DNA of 43,502 nucleotides, taken from assembly GCF_001194135.2 (NCBI RefSeq), contig NC_069001.1:964448-1007949 (forward strand). The letters run 5' to 3'. Source of the DNA: Octopus bimaculoides. Lineage: Eukaryota. A program made the position numbers and the translations under genes. The notes beneath the pieces are model-generated. The model saw only the letters and a list, made by a program, of their open reading frames with translations. It ran no database searches and was not told the DNA's origin. Positions within the stretch are counted from its first letter, which is position 1; the number at the start of each line of letters is the position of its first letter. Below are positions 9,538 through 41,235 of the stretch, piece by piece.

Positions 9538-9928
9538 CTCCACAGAAAGACACTTGTTCCTGTCCTGGCACAAAGCCAGCTTCCTCTCTTTTACAATCCG
9601 ATTCAGTTGAGAGCTTTTATGATGTTTATTTTATCTTTCCTTTTGCAAGTTACACGGCAACCTTACTTGTGCTGGTGACACAGAAAATAAGGCACCCACT
9701 AAACACTGTAAAGTGGTTGGCATTAGGAAGGGCATGTTGCCATGGAAACCCTGCCAAAGCAGACACTGGAGCTTGACACCATCCTCCAACTCATCAGATC
9801 CTGTCAAACCTATATCAGCATGGAAGACAGGTGTTAAATGATGATGATCAAGACAATCATGCTGATACAGGTACATACAAATGCCAATTAGCTAATAGTG
9901 AATCTATTTTAATAACTGTTTGTAATTA

Positions 9929-10204
<276 letters not shown>

Positions 10205-10689
10205 TTACAACACAAAAAAAGACGACGACAACAAATGACAATTTCATTTACCAAAATATAATACATCAGATTGGGACAGGGGCTTTAGACATTTTGGCAC
10301 AACAGTTCTGGCCCTTGCTTACTTGTTTAGCTTTCTTCATCACGTTGTGTGTGTGTGTGGTGGCTGATGAAACGCTAACAAAATGTGGAAAAGCAAAGTT
10401 TTCTCACAAAGGATTTCAGTACATCTTTGACAAAGTAGAAACTAACTAAAAGTCAAGGAGAGAGAGAGAGATTAAGAAACACATATGTATGTCCTTCTCT
10501 AGAGCCAAAAAGTACAGTTAGTAAAACAGATTCAATGGCCAGTCAGTCATGGAAAATTACCAGTGTCCAAACAGCCCTTGACCAAACATCTGATTCTGTT
10601 GAGAAAAGGGGTTTTGGCCCTGTGGCAAGTTGAACAATCACCCTTCAACCCATCATAACTAAGTTATGGTGGGTGCTGTGATAACCAGT

Positions 10690-11365
10690 GATATATAACA
10701 AGTTGCCATGGCAATGAGCCATACAAAGCAGGTTTGCTCTAGTAATTGGACAAACATGGAAGTTTGCCCTGGCAATCATATATACATAAGAAATGGCCCC
10801 TAGTAACACGTTTGTACATGGAAGGCTGCCTTGGCAATCAGTTTGTACAGGGAAGGCTTCCAATGGCAATCAGATATACATGGCAAGTTGTCCGAGTAAC
10901 TATCTACAGGTAGCAGGTTGCCCTAGCAATTAGCTGATACATGAAAGGTTGTCACAAAATACCAGTTATACGTTGTGGATTACACAAGCAATTCAATTAT
11001 ATAAGTCAGGGTTGCTATAGCAATCAAAATATATGTGAAATACTGCCATAAAAACCAGCTATACATCAGTTAAGTTGCCCTGGCAATCAGTTATGTATGG
11101 CAGGTTGCCCTGGCAATCAGTTATGTATGGCAGGTTGCCCTGGCAATCAGTTATGTATGGCAGGTTGCCCTGGCAATCAGCTGTGTATGGCAGGTTGCCC
11201 TGGCAATCAGCTGTGTATGGTAGGTTGCCCTGGCAATCAGCTGTGTATGATAGGTTGCCCTGGCAATCATCTGTGTATGGCAGGTTGCCCTGGCAACCTG
11301 CTATAATTAGCAAGTCACCTTGACAACCAGATATAAACTAACAGCAGGTTACCTTGACAACTATC
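10690..11365. repeat. 30-bp minisatellite (caggttgccctggcaatcagYtRtgtatgg)n; homogeneous core 11071-11300, degenerate flanks
   Basis: About 7.7 near-identical 30-bp units, plus diverged units at roughly 30-31 bp spacing from about 10690 to 11365. Confidence 0.95.
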
Positions 11366-11893
11366 TATAAATGACCCAGCTGCCTATAATTAGCCTGTAT
11401 ATAATTAGGTTGCTTATAATTAGTCATTATCCAACTGTGCTACAAGCTGTGAGCTGCAAATAACATACGAATCTCTCTCTTTCTCTTTCTGCACTGGAAT
11501 GTGCACTGTTAGATGCATTGAAATGCAGCAGCTGCATATGACAATATTTAATTACAAAAGGAAGAGAAATAATATAGGTGCAACAAATGTTTGCAGCAAA
11601 TGTGTGCAGTGTGCAGTGTTACAGGTAATAGTGCATACTAATAAGATGCAATAACTTGTTAATAGGTTGTTGGTGTTGTTATGGTTAAAGGAGTCATTGG
11701 GATTAGGTGCTGAGTGTGTGTGTGCACATGTGTATATGTGTGTGTGTTTACATTATTTCGTTGTGCATGTGCGGTTGTGTAACTGAGCACATGCGTATAA
11801 TTGTGCACGTGTGTATGTGTGCATAGATGTATAGGTGTGTGTGTGTATGTGATTATGAGTGTTAGAATATGTGAGGGAGAGTAAGAGGCAAAC

Positions 11894-11924
<31 letters not shown>

Positions 11925-12091
11925 GCAATTAGAAGAGAGAATGAGAAAAAAGACAAGGGGAAGGGGACAGAGAAGAGGGGAGAATAGAAAAGGAACAACA
12001 GGGTAATGTGAGATGGGAGGAGGGGGAAGAGGAGAGGGGAACAAAGAGGTGGGAAAGAACATGTGGTTAACCACAGAATGAATATGAAAGG

Positions 12092-12125
<34 letters not shown>

Positions 12126-12145
12126 AGAGAGGAAACACAATTAGA

Positions 12146-12310
12146 TATGGCTGTGTAGTTAAGACGTTCACTCCCCAATCATGTGTATTTGGGGTTCAGT
12201 TCCACTGTGTGGCACTTTGGGCAAGTGCTTTCTACTATAGCCCCAGGAAGACCAAAGCTTTGAGAGTGGATTTGGTAGACGGAAACTGAAAGAAGCCTGT
12301 CACATATATG
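12146..12310 (+). mobile_element. tRNA-derived SINE family B (CORE-like cttgggcaagtg motif)
   Basis: atggctgtgtagttaag..ggttcagttccactgtgtggcactttgggcaagtgctttctactatagcc..gagtggatttggtagacggaaactgaaagaagcc. Relatives at 21560-21700 (+), 29690-29850 (+), 20590-20720 (-) and 35730-35860 (-). Confidence 0.75.
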
Positions 12311-12349
12311 TTTTCCTTCCTATCTATTAAAAGGAGGCACAAGCACTTT

Positions 12350-12500
12350 CACATGCATGTATACGCACGACAGGAACTTCTGCCAACCAAATTCAATCTC
12401 AAAGCTAAAGCAGAAGACATTTGCTCAAGATACCACACAGCGGGACTGAACCTGAAACCATATCATTGAGAAGCAAGTTTCCTAACTACACAGCCATTGT
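12350..12500 (-). mobile_element. Family B SINE copy, inverted relative to 12146-12310
   Basis: Reverse complement reads atggctgtgtagttaggaaacttgcttc..ggttcagtcccgctgtgtggtatcttgagcaaatgtcttctg. Confidence 0.7.
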
Positions 12501-12627
12501 ACAAGTGCATGTGTGTGTGTGTGTGTGTGTGTACAGGGAGAGGAGAAAGGTCCAATGGTGAGTAACTGTATTTCAAGAACAAGTGTTGCTCGGAGTTTGG
12601 TGACAGACAATCGAAAGGAATACTCAC

Positions 12628-12670
12628 CAACTCGTTTTGATGTCTTGGCACGGCGCCTCACAACCTGAGA
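12628..12670 (-). CDS. cnk: cnk exon SQVVRRRAKTSKRV (43 nt, phase 0 to 1), basic segment preceding the PH domain
   Basis: Acceptor ttttgttttcctctttag|TCT CAG; donor GTT G|gtgagt. The basic stretch parallels the Lys/Arg-rich segment before RRISCKDLG in vertebrate CNKSR2/IPCEF1. Confidence 0.85.
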
Positions 12671-15962: not shown

Positions 15963-17806
15963 AGTGTGCTGTTGGTGGTGGTGGTGGTGGTGGTGGTGGT
16001 GTGCTGTTGGTGGTGGTGGTGGTGGTGTGCATGACATGTGACTGAAACCAGCACTGCTGCCACTACTACCTTAAAAACTAGTAGTGTTGTGGTTGCAGTT
16101 ATGTGGTGGTGGTGGTGGTGGTGGTGGTAGTGTTGTTGTTCTTGTTGGCAGAGATGACGGTGTTGAAGATGGTTGAGATATTGGTGGTGGTGATAGTAAG
16201 GGCAATGGTAGTGGTTGATAGTGACAGCAGTAGTAGTTGTAGCAGTGGTAGCAGTAATGCCTTAATCTGTCAAGGCATCCAGCCACTTCATCATCATCAT
16301 CACCATCACCACTTCTAGAGACCTACATGAAATTTGAGTCAGTGTCCTTCATATGAAACTAGTGAAGTACGATGGCTGACCACTCACAGCCACTAATGAT
16401 GCAAACCCTTTCTGATGCACAACTTTCTAAACCCCACCACCACCACCACCACCACACATTCCCTGCTACCCCAACCCTTCTCTCTCTCTCTCTCATGACT
16501 GGCAAAATTGCGCAAGAAACAAAGGCCAGTCTGTATATTTTCAGGAAATACTTGAGAGTCGAGTGGAACTTGGTAAGGCTACGCTTTCAGACTGACCACG
16601 AAATAATCTATGGNNNNNNNNNNNNNNNNNNNNNNNNNNNNNNNNNNNNNNNNNNNNNNNNNNNNNNNNNNNNNNNNNNNNNNNNNNNNNNNNNNNNNNN
16701 NNNNNNNNNNNNNNNNNNNNNNNNNNNNNNNNNNNNNNNNNNNNNNNNNNNNNNNNNNNNNNNNNNNNNNNNNNNNNNNNNNNNNNNNNNNNNNNNNNNN
16801 NNNNNNNNNNNNNNNNNNNNNNNNNNNNNNNNNNNNNNNNNNNNNNNNNNNNNNNNNNNNNNNNNNNNNNNNNNNNNNNNNNAACACTAAATGAAAGACT
16901 GACAAATACATCCGGTCTTTAAGGAGCTCACCTAACCCTATGCACCACTTCAGATGATGAATTAACGGCTGTCACATTTCTCTGCTGGCCACAACATGTA
17001 AAACTGTGGTTAAGGAGTTCACTTGGGAACCACATTGCTGCAGGTTCAATCCTGCAGTGGAGGAGCAAGCATTTTCTACCACAGCCTTGGCTGGCTGGAT
17101 CAATGGCCTTGGTTGACCCCCAAGCCCTTATTACTGACACCTTGGGAGAGGGGGGGAGGTATTGGTTGATCTGGGGCTATAGATGAAGACACTTGCCCAA
17201 GGTGCTGTACAGTGGGATTGAACCCAAAAACACAGTTACAAAAAAAAAAAAAAAAAGCTAAACCACAAAGCCAAGCCTCAATAGAAAATTCCAATATCAG
17301 AAAAGAATCTTTAACAGAATGTCAAAACTATTTTTAGACATTCCATCCGTTCTTTCTCATTAATTAGATAAATTATGCAGCTGACCTGGCACTGCACTAT
17401 CTGCATTGTCAATGTGCAAGCGTTATCGACATTTCCATTATGTTACATACTGCAACATCTAATGCAGCTTATTGCACTTGTAATATACATGGTTGCTGCA
17501 CTAAAGGCCTGATGCACTGCCATGTGTAATAGAGGCATTGTGCACATACTCAGTGATGCACCTGTTATTGCCCACTGCACTATGAATGTTGAACGACACA
17601 TCTGCAGTATGATGCACCTGTGGAACTACAATGCATGACTGCTGCATCACACCTGCTACAATGTGCATCAAGTTACTACCTGTTGCACTATTTGCATTAT
17701 GGCTGGTGAACCGCATGTCTATAGCATGTTCTACTGAAGAACACATCAAATAATGTAGTCCTAGATACACTTAGCAAAAATATCTACTGGATTAGACCAG
17801 CTTAAG

Positions 17807-20059: not shown

Positions 20060-21828
20060 CATATACGCATACAATACACACAGAGATACTACACATACAG
20101 AGGAATACATAGAGATAATACACACACACAAACTACACAGATATATACATATATACAGGTATGTACACACACTCTACCCTACCACAGACAACATTCGTTT
20201 TTCCAAAGCTGTCATGTTTTCTGATGACTCAAAAAATGGGAAACACTTGGTTGTAAGAGGAATGTGACTGCACAGCAAGGCAGGCAGGCAGGCAGGTACC
20301 ATGGTGATGACATGACACAAGGGTTGATGTGTGACAAGGTCATGCCAAAATGACGCCTTCAGTATCGTTACAAAGACTTCCTTCTGGGGAAAGCAACAAA
20401 GCCACAACTTCTGATCTGTTTCTAAAACAATTCACATTTTACGTCAAAAGGCTTAAAGAATCGTCTCCAATCTTTTTGTTTTTGTTTTTAAAGCCTTACA
20501 CTATCTTAATCTGTTGGTCTCTTTTGCCAAGGACATAAACAGACCGACACCAGTGATCGAGCAGTGGTGGGAACAAACATGGGCACAAAAATACGCACAC
20601 ACACACACACCAGCTTCTTTCATTTTCTGTCTACCAAATCCACTCAGAAAGCTTTGGTTGGCTCATGGCTACAGCAGAAGACACTTGTCCAAGGTTCCAC
20701 GCAGGGGGACTGAACCCAGAAGGTATTAATTCCAGTTCTTTTATATTCAGTGTTCAAATTCTGCTGCGATCAACTTCACCTTTCATCCCCTTGGAATCAA
20801 TGAAACAGTAACTAATCCAAGATGGTGGCTTAACACATTGAACTGGATACCTTGTAGTATTAATTCCAGCTCCCTGAGTTCAAATCCTGCCTTGGCCTAT
20901 TCGGTGGTAGATTTCATCTGTTACCCAAGTTTAGCCCACCTATCTATCTGTCTGTATGTGTGCGTGCATATAAATGTATAGTTGTATGTGAGAGTGCACG
21001 TTTGTGCCCCCTTTGTCTTGACATTGTGTGAATATTGTGAATAAATGTCATCATGCGGAAAGATGTCTGGCCAGAATGATGACAAACTTTACCAGGCATG
21101 ACAAACAGACATACACCGCCCCCAATCCCCTCACCAGAGAAACATCCTCCACACACGAACCACCACCACCACCACCATCATGACCACATGCATGCACACA
21201 CACACACGCTCATAGACTACCTACCTTGCCACCCACTGCTCCACTCCTTACACATGCTGCTGGTAACAGACTAAACATCATCCTACCGATCGACCCACTG
21301 AAACTCTCAAAATCTCATGGGGGGGGGGGCACTAGCCCTTCACATTCTTCACATATCCAACACAGTATCACAAGGGATGGGTTTCCTCTCTGAGAAGGTG
21401 GTCGTTGCAGATCCAAAAACACACTCCACCCCCATCCTGCCCCCCTTTTGCAGCCCTTCAACTCCATCCCATACACTGGTCTACATCCTCACTGCTTTAC
21501 ATATATGGCTGGGATGGGTCACCTTTACTCTGACAGTGTCTAGACATAAATGTGACTGTGTGGTTAGGTGAGAAGTGTGCTTTGCAACCATGTGGTTTCA
21601 GGTTCAGTCCCACTGTGTGGTACCTTCAACAAGTTTCTTTCAGTTTAACCCAAGGTGAACCAATTCATTGCTAATGAATTAAGTAAATTGTAACTGTGTG
21701 AAAATTGTGAGTGTCTCTCTCTACTTTACAACACTCAGGGAGTATCGTAAGGAGGATCGATTTCTGAAGGGCTGCTTAAATGGGGCCCCAGAATTTTTAC
21801 TGCATTTACCTCACTCCTACGCTTATTG

Positions 21829-26416: not shown

Positions 26417-27164
26417 TCACAGACCACAGATACATTTATAGATATATAAACATGAATATGAAAATAAAATAAAGACAAACTGATCCCAATGAAAATTGAA
26501 CCCTCATTTCTCAACCACTCAACTGCAAAATACTTTCTTTTAAATCAACCTAGATGTAAACAGAAGAACTCCATGACTATAAGAAATTTTGTTGAGATTT
26601 GAAAACCTAGCTTCATGGATATATATATGCGGAAAGTAAAAACTCTTCCATTCTCTTCCAGTAATCAAGATATCTTTTATAACACTGCACCAGAAATTTC
26701 TGTTCCCCATGATCTTCCATAGATCTTCAATTATCTTGTGTTTGTCTGCCAAGAACACTGACTTCAGTTGAGTGGTCTTTGCCTGGTATTAGGGATACGA
26801 AAATGAACATCTTCAGCATTTTAATGTCAGCTTTGCCAAGCTTGCATGGATCAGACAGAATTCCTTGAAATGTGTCCTGTGTAGCCAGATACCATTCCTG
26901 TCACCAGCAGTTTCCAAGCAAGGTGATATTTCCTTCCACGGCCAGACACGTTTCCATGAAAGATTGCTTGAAACACAGTGACACTCATCTACAAATATCA
27001 TGCAATATCAAGACAAATGAGCACTGGGCTTCTTTCAGTTTCTGTCAACCAAATTCACAACAATTTGGTTGGCCTGAGATTGCAGTAGTTTAAGTAGAAT
27101 ACACTTGAACGAGGTGCCACACAGTGAAATTGAACCCAGAACCATGTGGTTGAAACGCAAACTT

Positions 27165-28984: not shown

Positions 28985-30580
28985 TGTGTATATAGAGAGA
29001 GAGTGAGTGAAGTTAGAATGTGTATGATGACGGAATAAAGAAAACAATAAAAAAAATATAGATATATTGATAGAGGAGTAAGATGTACGATGCCTGTATA
29101 TAAGATGTAGGAAAGGATGAGATGAGAGAAAGAGAGACAGAAAAAACGATGAAAGAAATGAACGACCATGAAAAGTACAAAAGACTGAAAACTTGATACA
29201 ACAATTGAACATTATTATTATTATGAATGGTGGTATGCATGGTGATGGTGGTGGTGGTGGTGTAATAGTGTAGATGCTGTTGTTATGTTCATGGTGTATT
29301 ACAGTAAGGGTGGCAGTGTTGGCGGTGAAGAACCGCAGAGAGATGTTAGCGGTGAACTGTTGCTGTTATGGTTTGCCCTCATCGAGCAAAACCTAAGATC
29401 GCAGGCAATACAGCCATGACCATCTCACCTATTTCTTAGAACTTCATCCACAAACCTTGTCTTTTTTTAGTAGTGCGGCCTGATGAACATGTGTGTGTCT
29501 CATGTGGCCCGCTTGTCGAAAAAGGCTGCCTGTCCAAACAAGTTTATAAAAGTAAACGAAACCTGATGGCAGTTGGTTCTAACATGTCAGATGACCACGT
29601 AAAGGCCACCACTACCCCCTCAGCTACACACACACACACACACACACTTGTGTGCTGTGATTTTGAAATTTCTCAAATTCTGTTCATAAGCGCATAGCTG
29701 TGTGGTTAAGCAGTTCGCTTCCCAACCAAGCGATCTTGTTTTCAGTCCTACTGCATGGCCCCTTGGGCAAGTATCTTCTATAACCACAGACCGACCGATG
29801 CCTTGTAAGTGGATTTGGTAGATGGAAACTGAAAGAAGCCTGTCGCGTGTTTGTTCCCCCACCACCGCTTGACAACTAATATTGGTTTGTTTACGCAGCG
29901 GTTCGGCAAAATACACCGATAGAATAAGTAACGAGCTTTAAAAAAAATAAATCCTGGAGTAGATTCGTTCAACTAATACCATTCAAGACGGAACCCCAGC
30001 ATGGCCGCAGTCCAAGGCTAAAATCTCCAAGGAATCGTTCCGTCTTCCTCCAGTATTTGACTGGCATCAAATAGTTACCAAGCTCAGAAGGGCGAAAGGC
30101 AAGAACTAACCCCGGCGAGGTTCGAACATAGAACATGAAAAATGGTTCTGACTTAATGCGATACTGGTCACCCATGTTTGTTGCACTGGTGGTGGTGGTA
30201 TGACAGTAGTTTGTTAGTGGTATGTATGGTATAGGTAGTGACGGTGGCATCAATGTTGGTATTTAGACCCAGGAAAAACCCTGAATAAGAAAGACTTGTT
30301 GATCAAAAGCCATTCTAGCCGTGACCATTCCGTATGAAACTACGTTTTGCAACGTATCCTTTTTCTTAAGCCAGCAATGTGATTTGAGGGAAATTTGGCT
30401 GTTATTTCTAGCAGGGTTGAGCGACTGTAGATTAGAAAATCATTATTCTTTAACAAGAATACAATTGACAGTGACTTCGAAGTTCCGGCCAGGTAAGCCG
30501 TCATCGGACTGTAACTCATCTTGGCTTTATACAGCCTCCGTGTCTATAAACATACATATTTTGTCTTGTTTGATTTGTCC

Positions 30581-35219: not shown

Positions 35220-35871
35220 AGATTAGGCTTAAGTTTATTATGATCTTAAAGATTCCTAACATAAGGGATTAACTCGGATTACCAGTCCATTGCAGATCAA
35301 CTTCCCAGCTATTCTGGAACTCTTTTCACAGCAGACAAACACATCTTTCATTTTTTTCTTGTTTCAGTCATTAGACTGTGGCCATACTGGGGCACCACTA
35401 AGAAGAATTTTTAGATGAATAAATCAACCCCAGTACTTTTTTTTTCTTTAATGCTAAGTACTCATGCTGTCAGTCTCTTTTGCCGAACTGCTAAGTGCTT
35501 GCATGGGTTGAACAATTTATTGAGGCAGATTTTCTATGGCTGGATGCTCTTCCTGTTGCCAACCCTCACCTATTTCCAAGTAAAGTAATATTTCCCCATG
35601 GCCTGACATGTTTTTCATGAATGATTGAAAATAAACAGCACCACTTGTATAACAGTGATGCTTGTTTACAACCAACACAAGATGTCAAAACAAGAGCAGA
35701 CACACACACACACACAAACTGTGGACTTCTTTCACTTTCCACTCATTAAAGGCTTTGGTCAGCCTGGGACTATAATAGAAGATACTAGTCCAAGGTTCCA
35801 CATAGGACTGAACCTGAGATCACATTGTTAGGAAGCAAGTTTCTCAACCACACAGCCACATCAGTGCTTAT

Positions 35872-35902
<31 letters not shown>

Positions 35903-39096: not shown

Positions 39097-39277
39097 GTTT
39101 ATACAAAATAAGCAAACCTTTATTCTCCTTATTCAACCCCAATCTCCATTCCCTCCATGACCTTCATGTCAGACACTCAACTAATGATAAGGATCATTAC
39201 CTGAGTGATGAAAGAGCATTAACGTTTGTTATGTTTTTCTTTTTCTACACACTATAGAAAGAAAGACAGGCACAAAC

Positions 39278-40269
39278 CTCTTTGGAAGTGTCTATTTTGC
39301 TGCCGATAGAATTCAGCCGAGTTATTTTGGTAAGGGTAGGAGTATTTTTGGCATCGCATGCAACTTCGGAATTAGTTCGAGATTTTGCTCTTACCACCAG
39401 CTCCCTATTCGGAGATTGCGGGATCTCCGACGTGCTCCAGCTGCGGTGCTCCACGGGTGTCCACTTGTGATGCGTTGTTGTGTCGAAGCTGGCGACAGAA
39501 TTGTCGCCGAAACCCTTGCTGTGCGCTATGTCGAAGTCAGCCGAATGGGAAACTAGTTGTCGAGCGGCGGTCGTTATTGTCGTCGTTGTTGTCGTGTGGG
39601 GAAGATTTCTTTTGCAGAGACTGTCAGTAGCAGAGGATAGACCAGTCTGAGGAACGGCCGGCTGACTGGCAGGAAAGCTTGCGATGCGTTTGTGGCGAGT
39701 GTGGTTGGCACTTCTTAAAATTAACTCCTTCGCTTCAGAGTCGAGCTGAAATTCATCGTGGACAGTAGTGTCGACCGGACAGCTGAACTTGCGTTGCACT
39801 GCATAGTCATACGCGGATGAATAAGTGGTCTCCGAAGTGTGGTGGGACTTTGTCTGCCGGAGCGGCTTGTGATATGCTCGATCGGCTACCGACGACTGTG
39901 CAGGGGTGGCATCCACGGAAACAGCGTAGGCACTAGTACTATTGGTGCTTGTGGTGCTACAAGATCTGGCTGTTACTTGAGAAGAATCTGGGACTTTGTT
40001 TGGACTCTCCGGGGTGACACTGCTGTTGCTGGTGTTGCTGGTGTTGCTGCTGCTGCTGATGCTGTTGTCGCTGCTGCTGCTGCTGGGAACTTTCTTGCTT
40101 TCAACTGTCACAGTGGTCACGGGATTCTTGTCGGCAGTGGGTGTGGTGGAGATGAAGCAAGAGTCCTCAGATGGTATTTCGGCTCTGAATTCTTTCGGCT
40201 TTGAGCAGAGGGTACTGGGTGGCAAATCTGACGTAGAATGGCGGTAGTTTATTCTGTCAGCTTTCACTT
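39278..40269 (-). CDS. cnk: CNK-family scaffold, large Ser/Thr-rich internal exon (992 nt, phase 1 to 0)
   Basis: Open frame of about 330 codons (ORF 39245-40267) with coding-like composition. Acceptor ttttttctctttgtattgcag|AA GTG at 40269; donor GAG|gtttgt at 39278. Phase 0 matches the next exon. Confidence 0.85.
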
Positions 40270-41235
40270 CTGCAATACAAAGAGAAAAAAAGTGTTAGAG
40301 GGGAAACAGATACACACACACACACACATAATATGAAAGAGAGAGAGTGGGGTGGGGAGAGACAGTAGGAAGGGGTAAACAATAACAAGTCAGTACCACA
40401 ACAGTAACTACCACTATGAGAGTAACCACCATCACCATCACCACCACTACCACTATGACCAACTACCATCCCGCCCGCCACTACCACAACACCACCATCA
40501 TCACAACTATCACAATAGAAACCACTGTCATTACTACCACCAATACTACCACCATTACTACCACCAATACTACCACCATTACTACCACCAATACTACCAA
40601 CAACAACCACAACAGTTTCTACTCTGCAAAAAAGTTTATCAATAGAGGAAGGAAAGCAAAAGCAAAGGGGAAGTCTATTGAACTGATGTCAGTGATTATT
40701 GATCAATGAAATCAATCAAATATGGCAGCCAGTCTTGTTTTTTATTGATCTGGTTTGACTTTATTCTTATATTTATGTTTTTTTTTAATACTTTTTGTAT
40801 ATTTATATCTCTACATCCAGCAATTTGTTAGGATGTGTTTGGGTTGAATGGGTTTATAAATTTAGATATCTGCAAAGGGAATTTTAGTGTAGTTATTTTG
40901 TAAGTGGAGAAGTAGTGGGTGATGGGCATGGTGAGAGGGGAGGAGAGAGAGAGAAAGAGAGAGAGAGAGTGAGGCGGGAAAGACAGAAGAGAGAAAGAGT
41001 GAAGGGTGAGAGAGAGGAAGAAGTGAGAAGGAAAGACAAGAAGAAAGGAGGGGAGGCAGATAGAGAGAGAAAAAGTAGGGCAGAGAGAGAGAGAGAGAGA
41101 GCGAGAGTGGAAGAGGAGAGAGAGGATAAGAAGAGAGAGTAAGAAGGAAAGAAAAACAGGAAGAGAAAAATGCTAAGTCAGGGAGAGAGAGAGAGAGGGA
41201 AATAGGAGAGAATGGAAGAACACAAAGAGAAAGAG

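Follow-up and report, generated by a model that had tools for sequence, protein, structure and literature searches.

The locus described here raises the question of whether a tandem repeat in an intron of an Octopus bimaculoides gene, with units that resemble the X-box recognised by RFX factors, is a regulatory array or an ordinary minisatellite. A preliminary description of the sequence had favoured a regulatory array and proposed that minisatellite expansion had built a series of phased X-boxes acting as an enhancer or internal promoter. The window, by which we mean the whole stretch of 43,502 nucleotides that was analysed, is draft O. bimaculoides sequence with N gaps and 38% GC. Judged from this sequence, the array is probably (roughly two chances in three) an ordinary, old and neutral intronic minisatellite of the VNTR type with a recently homogenised centre, and its likeness to the X-box would be incidental.

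Structure of the array

TRF detected a 30-bp tandem repeat at 11074–11296 (7.4 copies, 96% matches, score 376). The core GTTGCCCTGGCAAT occurs in seven exact copies from 11074 to 11254, one per 30 bp, and the next in line, at 11284, is the palindromic GTTGCCCTGGCAAC. The preliminary description had given these same positions, and the six cores that it listed for the flanks, at 10702, 10763, 10825, 10917, 11011 and 11348, also matched exactly. When up to 3 mismatches were allowed, the 30-mer was found 7 times in the window, with 0.00 occurrences expected from shuffles. The repeat that had been placed at 10690–11365 is therefore real, but it is larger than this. Wrap-around alignment of 10640–11470 against the concatenated consensus showed that the whole array contains approximately 24 units and extends from 10672 to 11413 (742 bp). 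By both TRF and wrap-around alignment, the units are arranged head-to-tail and have a length within the range of approximately 10–100 bp that characterises minisatellites. The array belongs among the non-coding minisatellites, and its structure supports the earlier proposal that it grew by tandem expansion. Its parts, to which no strand is assigned, are as follows.

10672–11073: old diverged left part, 13 units of 30–32 bp (mean 31) that are identical to the central consensus at 15–24 of 30 positions (wrap-around alignment, periods, unit identities)
11074–11296: young homogenised block, 7.4 units of exactly 30 bp with the core GTTGCCCTGGCAAT in each (TRF, exact-match counts, unit rows)
11284–11297: strict X-box site GTTGCCCTGGCAAC, the sole fit to the strict consensus in the window (regular-expression scan of both strands)
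11298–11413: diverged right part, the spacer of the 11284 unit followed by three-and-a-fraction decayed units (wrap-around alignment, TRF)

The plan of the array is that of a diverged, old periphery with a period of approximately 31 bp around a young, homogenised centre. The period of the old left units varies between 30 and 32 bp (mean 31.0), that of the central units is exactly 30 bp, and the divergence of the units grows toward both edges of the array. There was no higher-order (dimeric) period in the old part, where identity was flat at 0.56–0.60 at lags 1–5. The decayed units of the right part include GTCACCTTGACAAC at 11314 and GTTACCTTGACAAC at 11348, and the right edge merges into a 15-bp AT-rich repeat at 11380–11423.

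Within the young block, sub-variants are found in runs: three units with CAGTTATGTATGGCAG are followed by four units with CAGCTGTGTATGGCAG plus private changes, and units 5 and 6 have the additional common change C28T. Such runs of identical neighbouring sub-variants indicate recent stepwise local duplication. The majority consensus of the 17 diverged units is GTTGCCCTAGCAATCAGCTATACATGGCAG. Compared with the central units, it differs by G9>A in the core and has the spacer TATACAT where the centre has TGTGTAT. The spacer of the central units is thus derived by A>G changes from the ancestral TATACAT. The recently amplified 30-bp variant is a derivative that is 1 bp shorter than the old unit of approximately 31 bp.

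A CAGCTG E-box is found 1 bp past the core in the young b-type units 4–6 (11178–11183, 11208–11213 and 11238–11243), and unit 7 has CATCTG at 11268–11273. The ancestral consensus at this place is CAGCTA, and the E-box arose via the derived A>G changes in the spacer. The E-box-like site is a derived feature confined to three or four young units.

Location in the host gene

The array sits in a 2,456-bp intron (10172–12627), of which it fills 30%, of a minus-strand gene annotated as CNK or "IPCEF1-fusion-like". It lies 501–1,242 bp upstream (5′) of the first PH exon. This agrees with the intronic location upstream of this exon, at 0.5–1.1 kb, that had been claimed for it. The two exons that flank the intron are listed here, with a slash at each splice junction.

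10013–10171, minus strand: first PH-domain exon (translation ending in ...HYKRND), acceptor ...ttgacag/CC, donor G/gtaagg (tblastn 100% identity, Pfam PH E = 7e-8)
12628–12670, minus strand: small upstream exon of 14 residues, SQVVRRRAKTSKRV, donor G/GTGAGT (translation match; exact edges set by splice consensus)

The PH domain is contained in an ORF at 9926–10198 (Pfam E = 7e-8); among solved structures, it is closest to the PH domains found in IPCEF1 and myosin X. Exons of the host gene were located by tblastn at 40285–39278, 26011–25889, 18420–18346, 10171–10013, 9055–8978 and 2868–2800, with more downstream. The search matched the old models XP_014767612.1 and A0A0L8I2N8 and, in newer annotations, LOC106878660 of O. 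bimaculoides, LOC115222874 of O. sinensis and "IPCEF1 fusion 3-like" of O. vulgaris, all of them SAM-CRIC-PDZ-PH proteins, that is, CNK (connector enhancer of KSR). The host CNK gene spans approximately 107 kb, with the array in an internal intron, and the longest-isoform gene ranges in O. bimaculoides, O. sinensis and O. vulgaris are 107–214 kb. The vertebrate CNK relative CNKSR2 is a synaptic scaffold. None of the annotated isoforms uses the array; all skip it.

Likeness of the units to the RFX X-box

We judged X-box likeness by published consensus strings rather than by RFX weight matrices. The strict X-box consensus GTNRCC N0-3 RGYAAC and the monomer site GTTRCY are from PMC10530576, and the looser RTNRCC-N1-3-RGYAAC is the most restricted consensus string of Laurencon et al. 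2007 (PMC2375033). A regular-expression scan of both strands yielded one strict match in the entire window, at 11284–11297, which is one of the approximately 24 units. The seven central cores end in T and fail the strict consensus; on the minus strand they read ATTGCCAGGGCAAC and fit the looser string. The earlier view of the repeat as an array of X-boxes thus holds in the strict sense for the core at 11284, but the other seven young cores qualify only under RTNRCC-N1-3-RGYAAC.

With this looser string there were 10 matches at 9 sites in the window, all inside the array, as compared with 0.29 expected, and the sites in the array have the canonical 2-bp spacer (RTNRCC-N2-RGYAAC). The young core is an imperfect palindrome that matches 13 of 14 X-box positions. 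Of the two monomer sites in every young unit, one is perfect (GTTGCC, which fits GTTRCY) and the other imperfect. Over the window, GTTRCY monomer sites were not enriched, with 79 found and 89 expected. The X-box likeness is real and good, yet it is that of one sequence copied eight times and not of eight independent occurrences.

The preliminary description had also given the unit a length of about three helical turns, such that the sites would be in phase. At 10.5 bp per turn, 30 bp of B-DNA corresponds to 2.86 turns, with a rotation of approximately 50 degrees between successive sites, so the sites are not strictly in phase and this part of the proposal fails.

The X-box-like sites could mean that RFX dimers bind eight or nine near-consensus X-boxes and that the array serves the CNK isoforms with a PH domain as an alternative promoter, or as an enhancer or silencer within the intron, with copy number tuning its output. 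We consider this unlikely. The nine sites in excess of expectation, the one perfect palindromic X-box among them and the perfect monomer site in every young unit speak for it, and the 30-bp spacing should leave space for neighbouring dimers. The likeness extends to X-boxes of ciliary genes in C. elegans, Drosophila and vertebrates, with which the array, having one perfect and eight one-off sites, shares inverted half-sites and a 2-bp spacer. In C. elegans, the possession of several X-boxes can modulate the expression of a gene (Chu et al. 2011, PMC3245922), and a full X-box variant repeated three times in tandem suffices for weak reporter expression (bioRxiv 10.1101/2021.02.03.429678). These cases share with the array the presence of more than one X-box per gene, but theirs are two or three sites and were experimentally tested. 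Because three tandem X-boxes suffice in C. elegans, eight accessible ones in an array could show activity with or without selection, and by this analogy incidental RFX activity of the array is plausible if the chromatin is open.

Several points count against a regulatory array bound by RFX. Seven of the eight young sites do not have the terminal C found in all validated fly X-boxes of PMC2375033 Table 2, in a search that required this C. Functional fly and worm X-boxes are typically single and promoter-proximal; most validated sites are single, lie 60–320 bp from the ATG, are conserved between species and belong to ciliary genes (PMC2375033). By contrast, the array has 8–9 copies that are not promoter-proximal but lie deep in a gene of more than 100 kb, which encodes a signalling scaffold and is not ciliary. 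Having an X-box is by itself no predictor of RFX dependence, and conservation of the motif is the criterion that separates functional from chance X-boxes (PMC2375033); in the array such conservation is not demonstrable, as described below. In addition, the look-elsewhere effect is large, in that 43 kb was scanned for likeness to any known motif. Our literature searches yielded neither a natural minisatellite made of X-boxes nor cephalopod repeats with an RFX motif, and no octopus ATAC-seq or reporter work that mentions RFX in cephalopods.

It is quite unlikely that lineage-specific minisatellite expansion alone gave the neuronal scaffold gene CNK a natural series of eight to nine sites for RFX dimers, and that this series serves PH-containing isoforms as an enhancer or alternative promoter tunable by copy number. 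If this were so, it would be a regulatory novelty born of tandem-repeat expansion in the cephalopod nervous system, and the array, if bound by RFX and variable in copy number, would be a clean example from nature of repeat expansion producing a homotypic enhancer in a single step. As the evidence stands, the array is one among the very many minisatellites of a repeat-rich cephalopod genome.

Conservation of core and spacer

The sole sequence argument for function is that the core is better conserved than the spacer; the preliminary description had held that the spacers of the flanking units had decayed while the core persisted. For this we used the 17 units outside the young block, taken as independent decayed copies, and compared them with their own majority consensus. 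Identity to this consensus was 74.0% in the core (174/235) and 68.4% in the spacer (186/272), which is not a significant difference (Fisher p = 0.17). Column-wise mean pairwise identity was 0.617 in the core and 0.534 in the spacer (one-sided Mann–Whitney p = 0.125), and the core window ranked second among the 30 circular windows of 14 columns. Per position across the aligned units, the check that had been suggested for the enhancer proposal, the excess of the core is small and non-significant, which is essentially the outcome that the preliminary description had itself set against a regulatory role. With no significant excess, the inference of an enhancer is unsupported.

When the diverged units were compared with the central consensus instead, identity was 0.73 in the core and 0.59 in the spacer. 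The old spacers seem decayed because they are compared with a centre that carries the derived spacer (0.59 against the central and 0.68 against the ancestral spacer). The six flank cores that had been cited as persisting are the best 6 of the 17 diverged units, and the remaining 11 have 2–5 mismatches to the strict X-box pattern. A left half-site that fits GTTRCY is present in 6 of the 17 old cores and a right half-site that fits RGYAAC in 2 of them.

Conservation depended on the type of the ancestral base. A/T columns were conserved at 0.69 and G/C columns at 0.45 (p = 0.0002), and A/T columns scored the same whether they lay in the core (0.697) or in the spacer (0.693). When the two factors were fitted together, membership of the core contributed +0.085 (t = 1.6) and A/T +0.243 (t = 4.6). 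The commonest substitutions in the array are G>A and C>T. This dominance, together with the dependence on base type, is as expected of neutral GC-to-AT decay when the genome is AT-rich and counts against constraint by RFX. Mirror positions of the palindrome are also unequally conserved (C5 0.88 and G10 0.51; C6 0.45 and G9 0.47). Constraint by an RFX dimer would predict symmetry, so the asymmetry argues against such constraint.

There is a weak, consistent trend toward core conservation, which is a point in favour of RFX binding. Among G/C columns, conservation was 0.54 in the core and 0.37 in the spacer, and indels are more frequent in the spacer than in the core. By our own reading of the alignment, the young block has had approximately 5 substitution events, none of them in the core, which has a probability of approximately 0.04 if events are uniform. 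These leftover signals are weak, were picked out after the fact and can also be explained by mutation: the TA/TG-rich tract of the spacer is prone to slippage, and the amplification process can favour a palindrome. With 17 units the test has low power, and its result is best read as giving no support for selection on the core rather than as refuting it. A caution that follows from this case is that setting decayed units against a recently homogenised centre makes any common segment appear conserved; comparison with the ancestral consensus and control for base composition abolish the signal of core conservation.

Dispersed elements, other binders and coding potential

Repeats of this kind can also be carried by mobile elements. 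Transposons built largely of minisatellites are well documented, bivalves included (PMC12001565), and the array could be a fragment of a dispersed element, such as the minisatellite inside a Helitron-like or MITE-like transposon, or one local representative of a satellite spread through the genome, with a palindromic core that comes from the element's own sequence. Like Helitron-N, DINE, HINE and the bivalve elements (PMC12001565), it is an array of short units with diverged edges in a repeat-rich intron. The genome is extremely repeat-rich, the array's own intron contains an inverted pair of a dispersed repeat at 12147–12497, and the palindromy of the unit reaches past the 14-bp core in places, for example as 14-nt arms at 11276–11305 that are 93% complementary. 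Unlike in transposon-borne minisatellites, however, no element termini accompany the array. Neither terminal inverted repeats nor a target-site duplication bracket it, and the inverted-repeat matches are due to the palindromy of the unit itself. A second copy of the unit, the array or its flanks is absent from the 43.5-kb window, where the neighbouring dispersed repeat has at least 6 copies, and no related sequence was found in the collections searched. On these grounds we regard an origin from a dispersed element as very unlikely, and a genome-wide family for the unit is unlikely on present evidence.

The database searches were as follows. The pattern GTTGCCCTGGCAAT-N15-17-GTTGCCCTGGCAAT had 0 matches each in viral, prokaryotic-genome and metagenome contigs, which hold no searchable cephalopod genomic DNA. 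A 21-mer over the unit junction had one metagenome match (L002), a chance match on a contig without a tandem repeat. Searches of 5.8 billion protein clusters and of 1.84 billion representatives returned no true relative for the ORFs of the array in any open frame, a weak test in that no cephalopod DNA is covered. In particular, no protein relative was found for an 84-aa ORF of the array, and all open frames of 10560–11470 concatenated with the PH-exon ORF gave matches via the PH part only. A HMMER search of the 94-aa frame against the 1.84 billion representatives returned 317 matches, all of them to unrelated 10-residue repeats (e.g. YHGLPWFTMV, SSRLPWPCVA). We rejected a coding exon: five of the six frames are open merely because the period is divisible by 3, and the isoforms do not use them. 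At 11039–11323, on both strands, the open frames through the young block give ORFs of 49–94 residues with 10-residue repeats such as LPWQSVMYGR and CQGNLPYTAD.

It is also conceivable that something other than RFX uses the array, for example an NFI protein at the half-site TGGCA, a bHLH protein or an octopus C2H2 zinc finger on the palindrome or the adjacent E-box, or that it works at the RNA level as an intronic splicing element in the minus-strand pre-mRNA. The core does contain TGGCA, a perfect CAGCTG stands 1 bp past the core in units 4–6 (CATCTG in unit 7), and a splice acceptor is located 0.5 kb downstream of the array. We nevertheless regard such a role as highly improbable. The E-box is derived and limited to three or four young units, there is no conservation signal specific to the E-box or TGGCA sub-motifs, and folding of the single strand gave unremarkable z-scores of –1.7 (one unit) and –2.9 (four units) and no hairpin that was both stable and conserved. 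A structured RNA or DNA was rejected as well, given these z-scores and that no Rfam family matched over the array.

Probable origin of the minisatellite

We return to the reading of the array as an ordinary minisatellite. A homogenised centre (96% matches) between progressively diverged units is the classic minisatellite structure. An ancestral unit of approximately 31 bp with the consensus given above would have been amplified long ago to approximately 24 units, and the outer units would then have decayed, chiefly by G>A and C>T. The seven to eight central units would lately have been re-amplified or homogenised via replication slippage or unequal exchange, a step that would have fixed the 30-bp variant with its derived spacer. 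We infer both this mechanism of amplification and the absence of a selected regulatory role. Judging from the units themselves, the X-box likeness is most probably a by-product of the unit sequence rather than something kept by selection.

As a comparison, other VNTR minisatellites with factor sites include SLC6A4 STin2, the INS VNTR and the HRAS1 minisatellite. MNS16A at human TERT is a VNTR minisatellite with GATA1 sites (PMC5438627). Like VNTRs of the MNS16A type, the array is head-to-tail and non-coding, has units of tens of bp, lies within or beside a gene and has a factor motif in each unit, which means that the number of sites could follow the copy number. VNTRs of the MNS16A type differ in that they have measured polymorphism and allele-dependent reporter activity, whereas the array is known from sequence alone and its motif is an RFX-like palindrome.

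Other features of the window

A single-copy palindromic X-box-like site, GTTGCCATGGAAAC, is found at 9736–9749, approximately 260 bp into the intron past the first PH exon. The site conforms to the worm-style consensus GTHNYYATRRNAAC, but at chance level: equally many matches arose in 13 of 100 shuffled versions of the window.

The inverted pair of repeats in the array's intron forms a nested inverted repeat at 12147–12497, with arms at 12147–12185/12459–12497, 12188–12241/12404–12457 and 12256–12284/12378–12406, and consists of two inverted copies of a dispersed repeat of approximately 160 bp. More copies are found at 29694–29855, 20613–20717, 35738–35896, 21553–21696, 17171–17234 and 27027–27137. 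This distribution suggests a SINE- or MITE-like family; ARAGORN found no tRNA-like part in the repeat. In the same intron, a TG/CA-rich low-complexity tract at 11791–11861 gave a sub-threshold Rfam match to mir-297 (27.7 bits compared with a gathering score of 90, E = 0.06), which is almost certainly compositional.

The old models XP_014767612.1 (554 aa) and A0A0L8I2N8 (636 aa), which correspond to 456–40285 of the window on the minus strand, are C-terminal fragments of LOC106878660 (1,084–1,123 aa in the newer annotation), and the N-terminus of A0A0L8I2N8 is translated repeat or intron sequence. The window spans just the 3′ half of this CNK gene. The Logan cluster of P0015 consists of decapodiform transcripts. 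A Logan contig of 1,496 bp (L001, SRR11869384) is genomic sequence of another octopus and contains the orthologue of the large S/T-rich exon (39245–40267 of the window), with 84% protein identity to that of O. bimaculoides and the same intron read-through, KEVCACLSFYSV.
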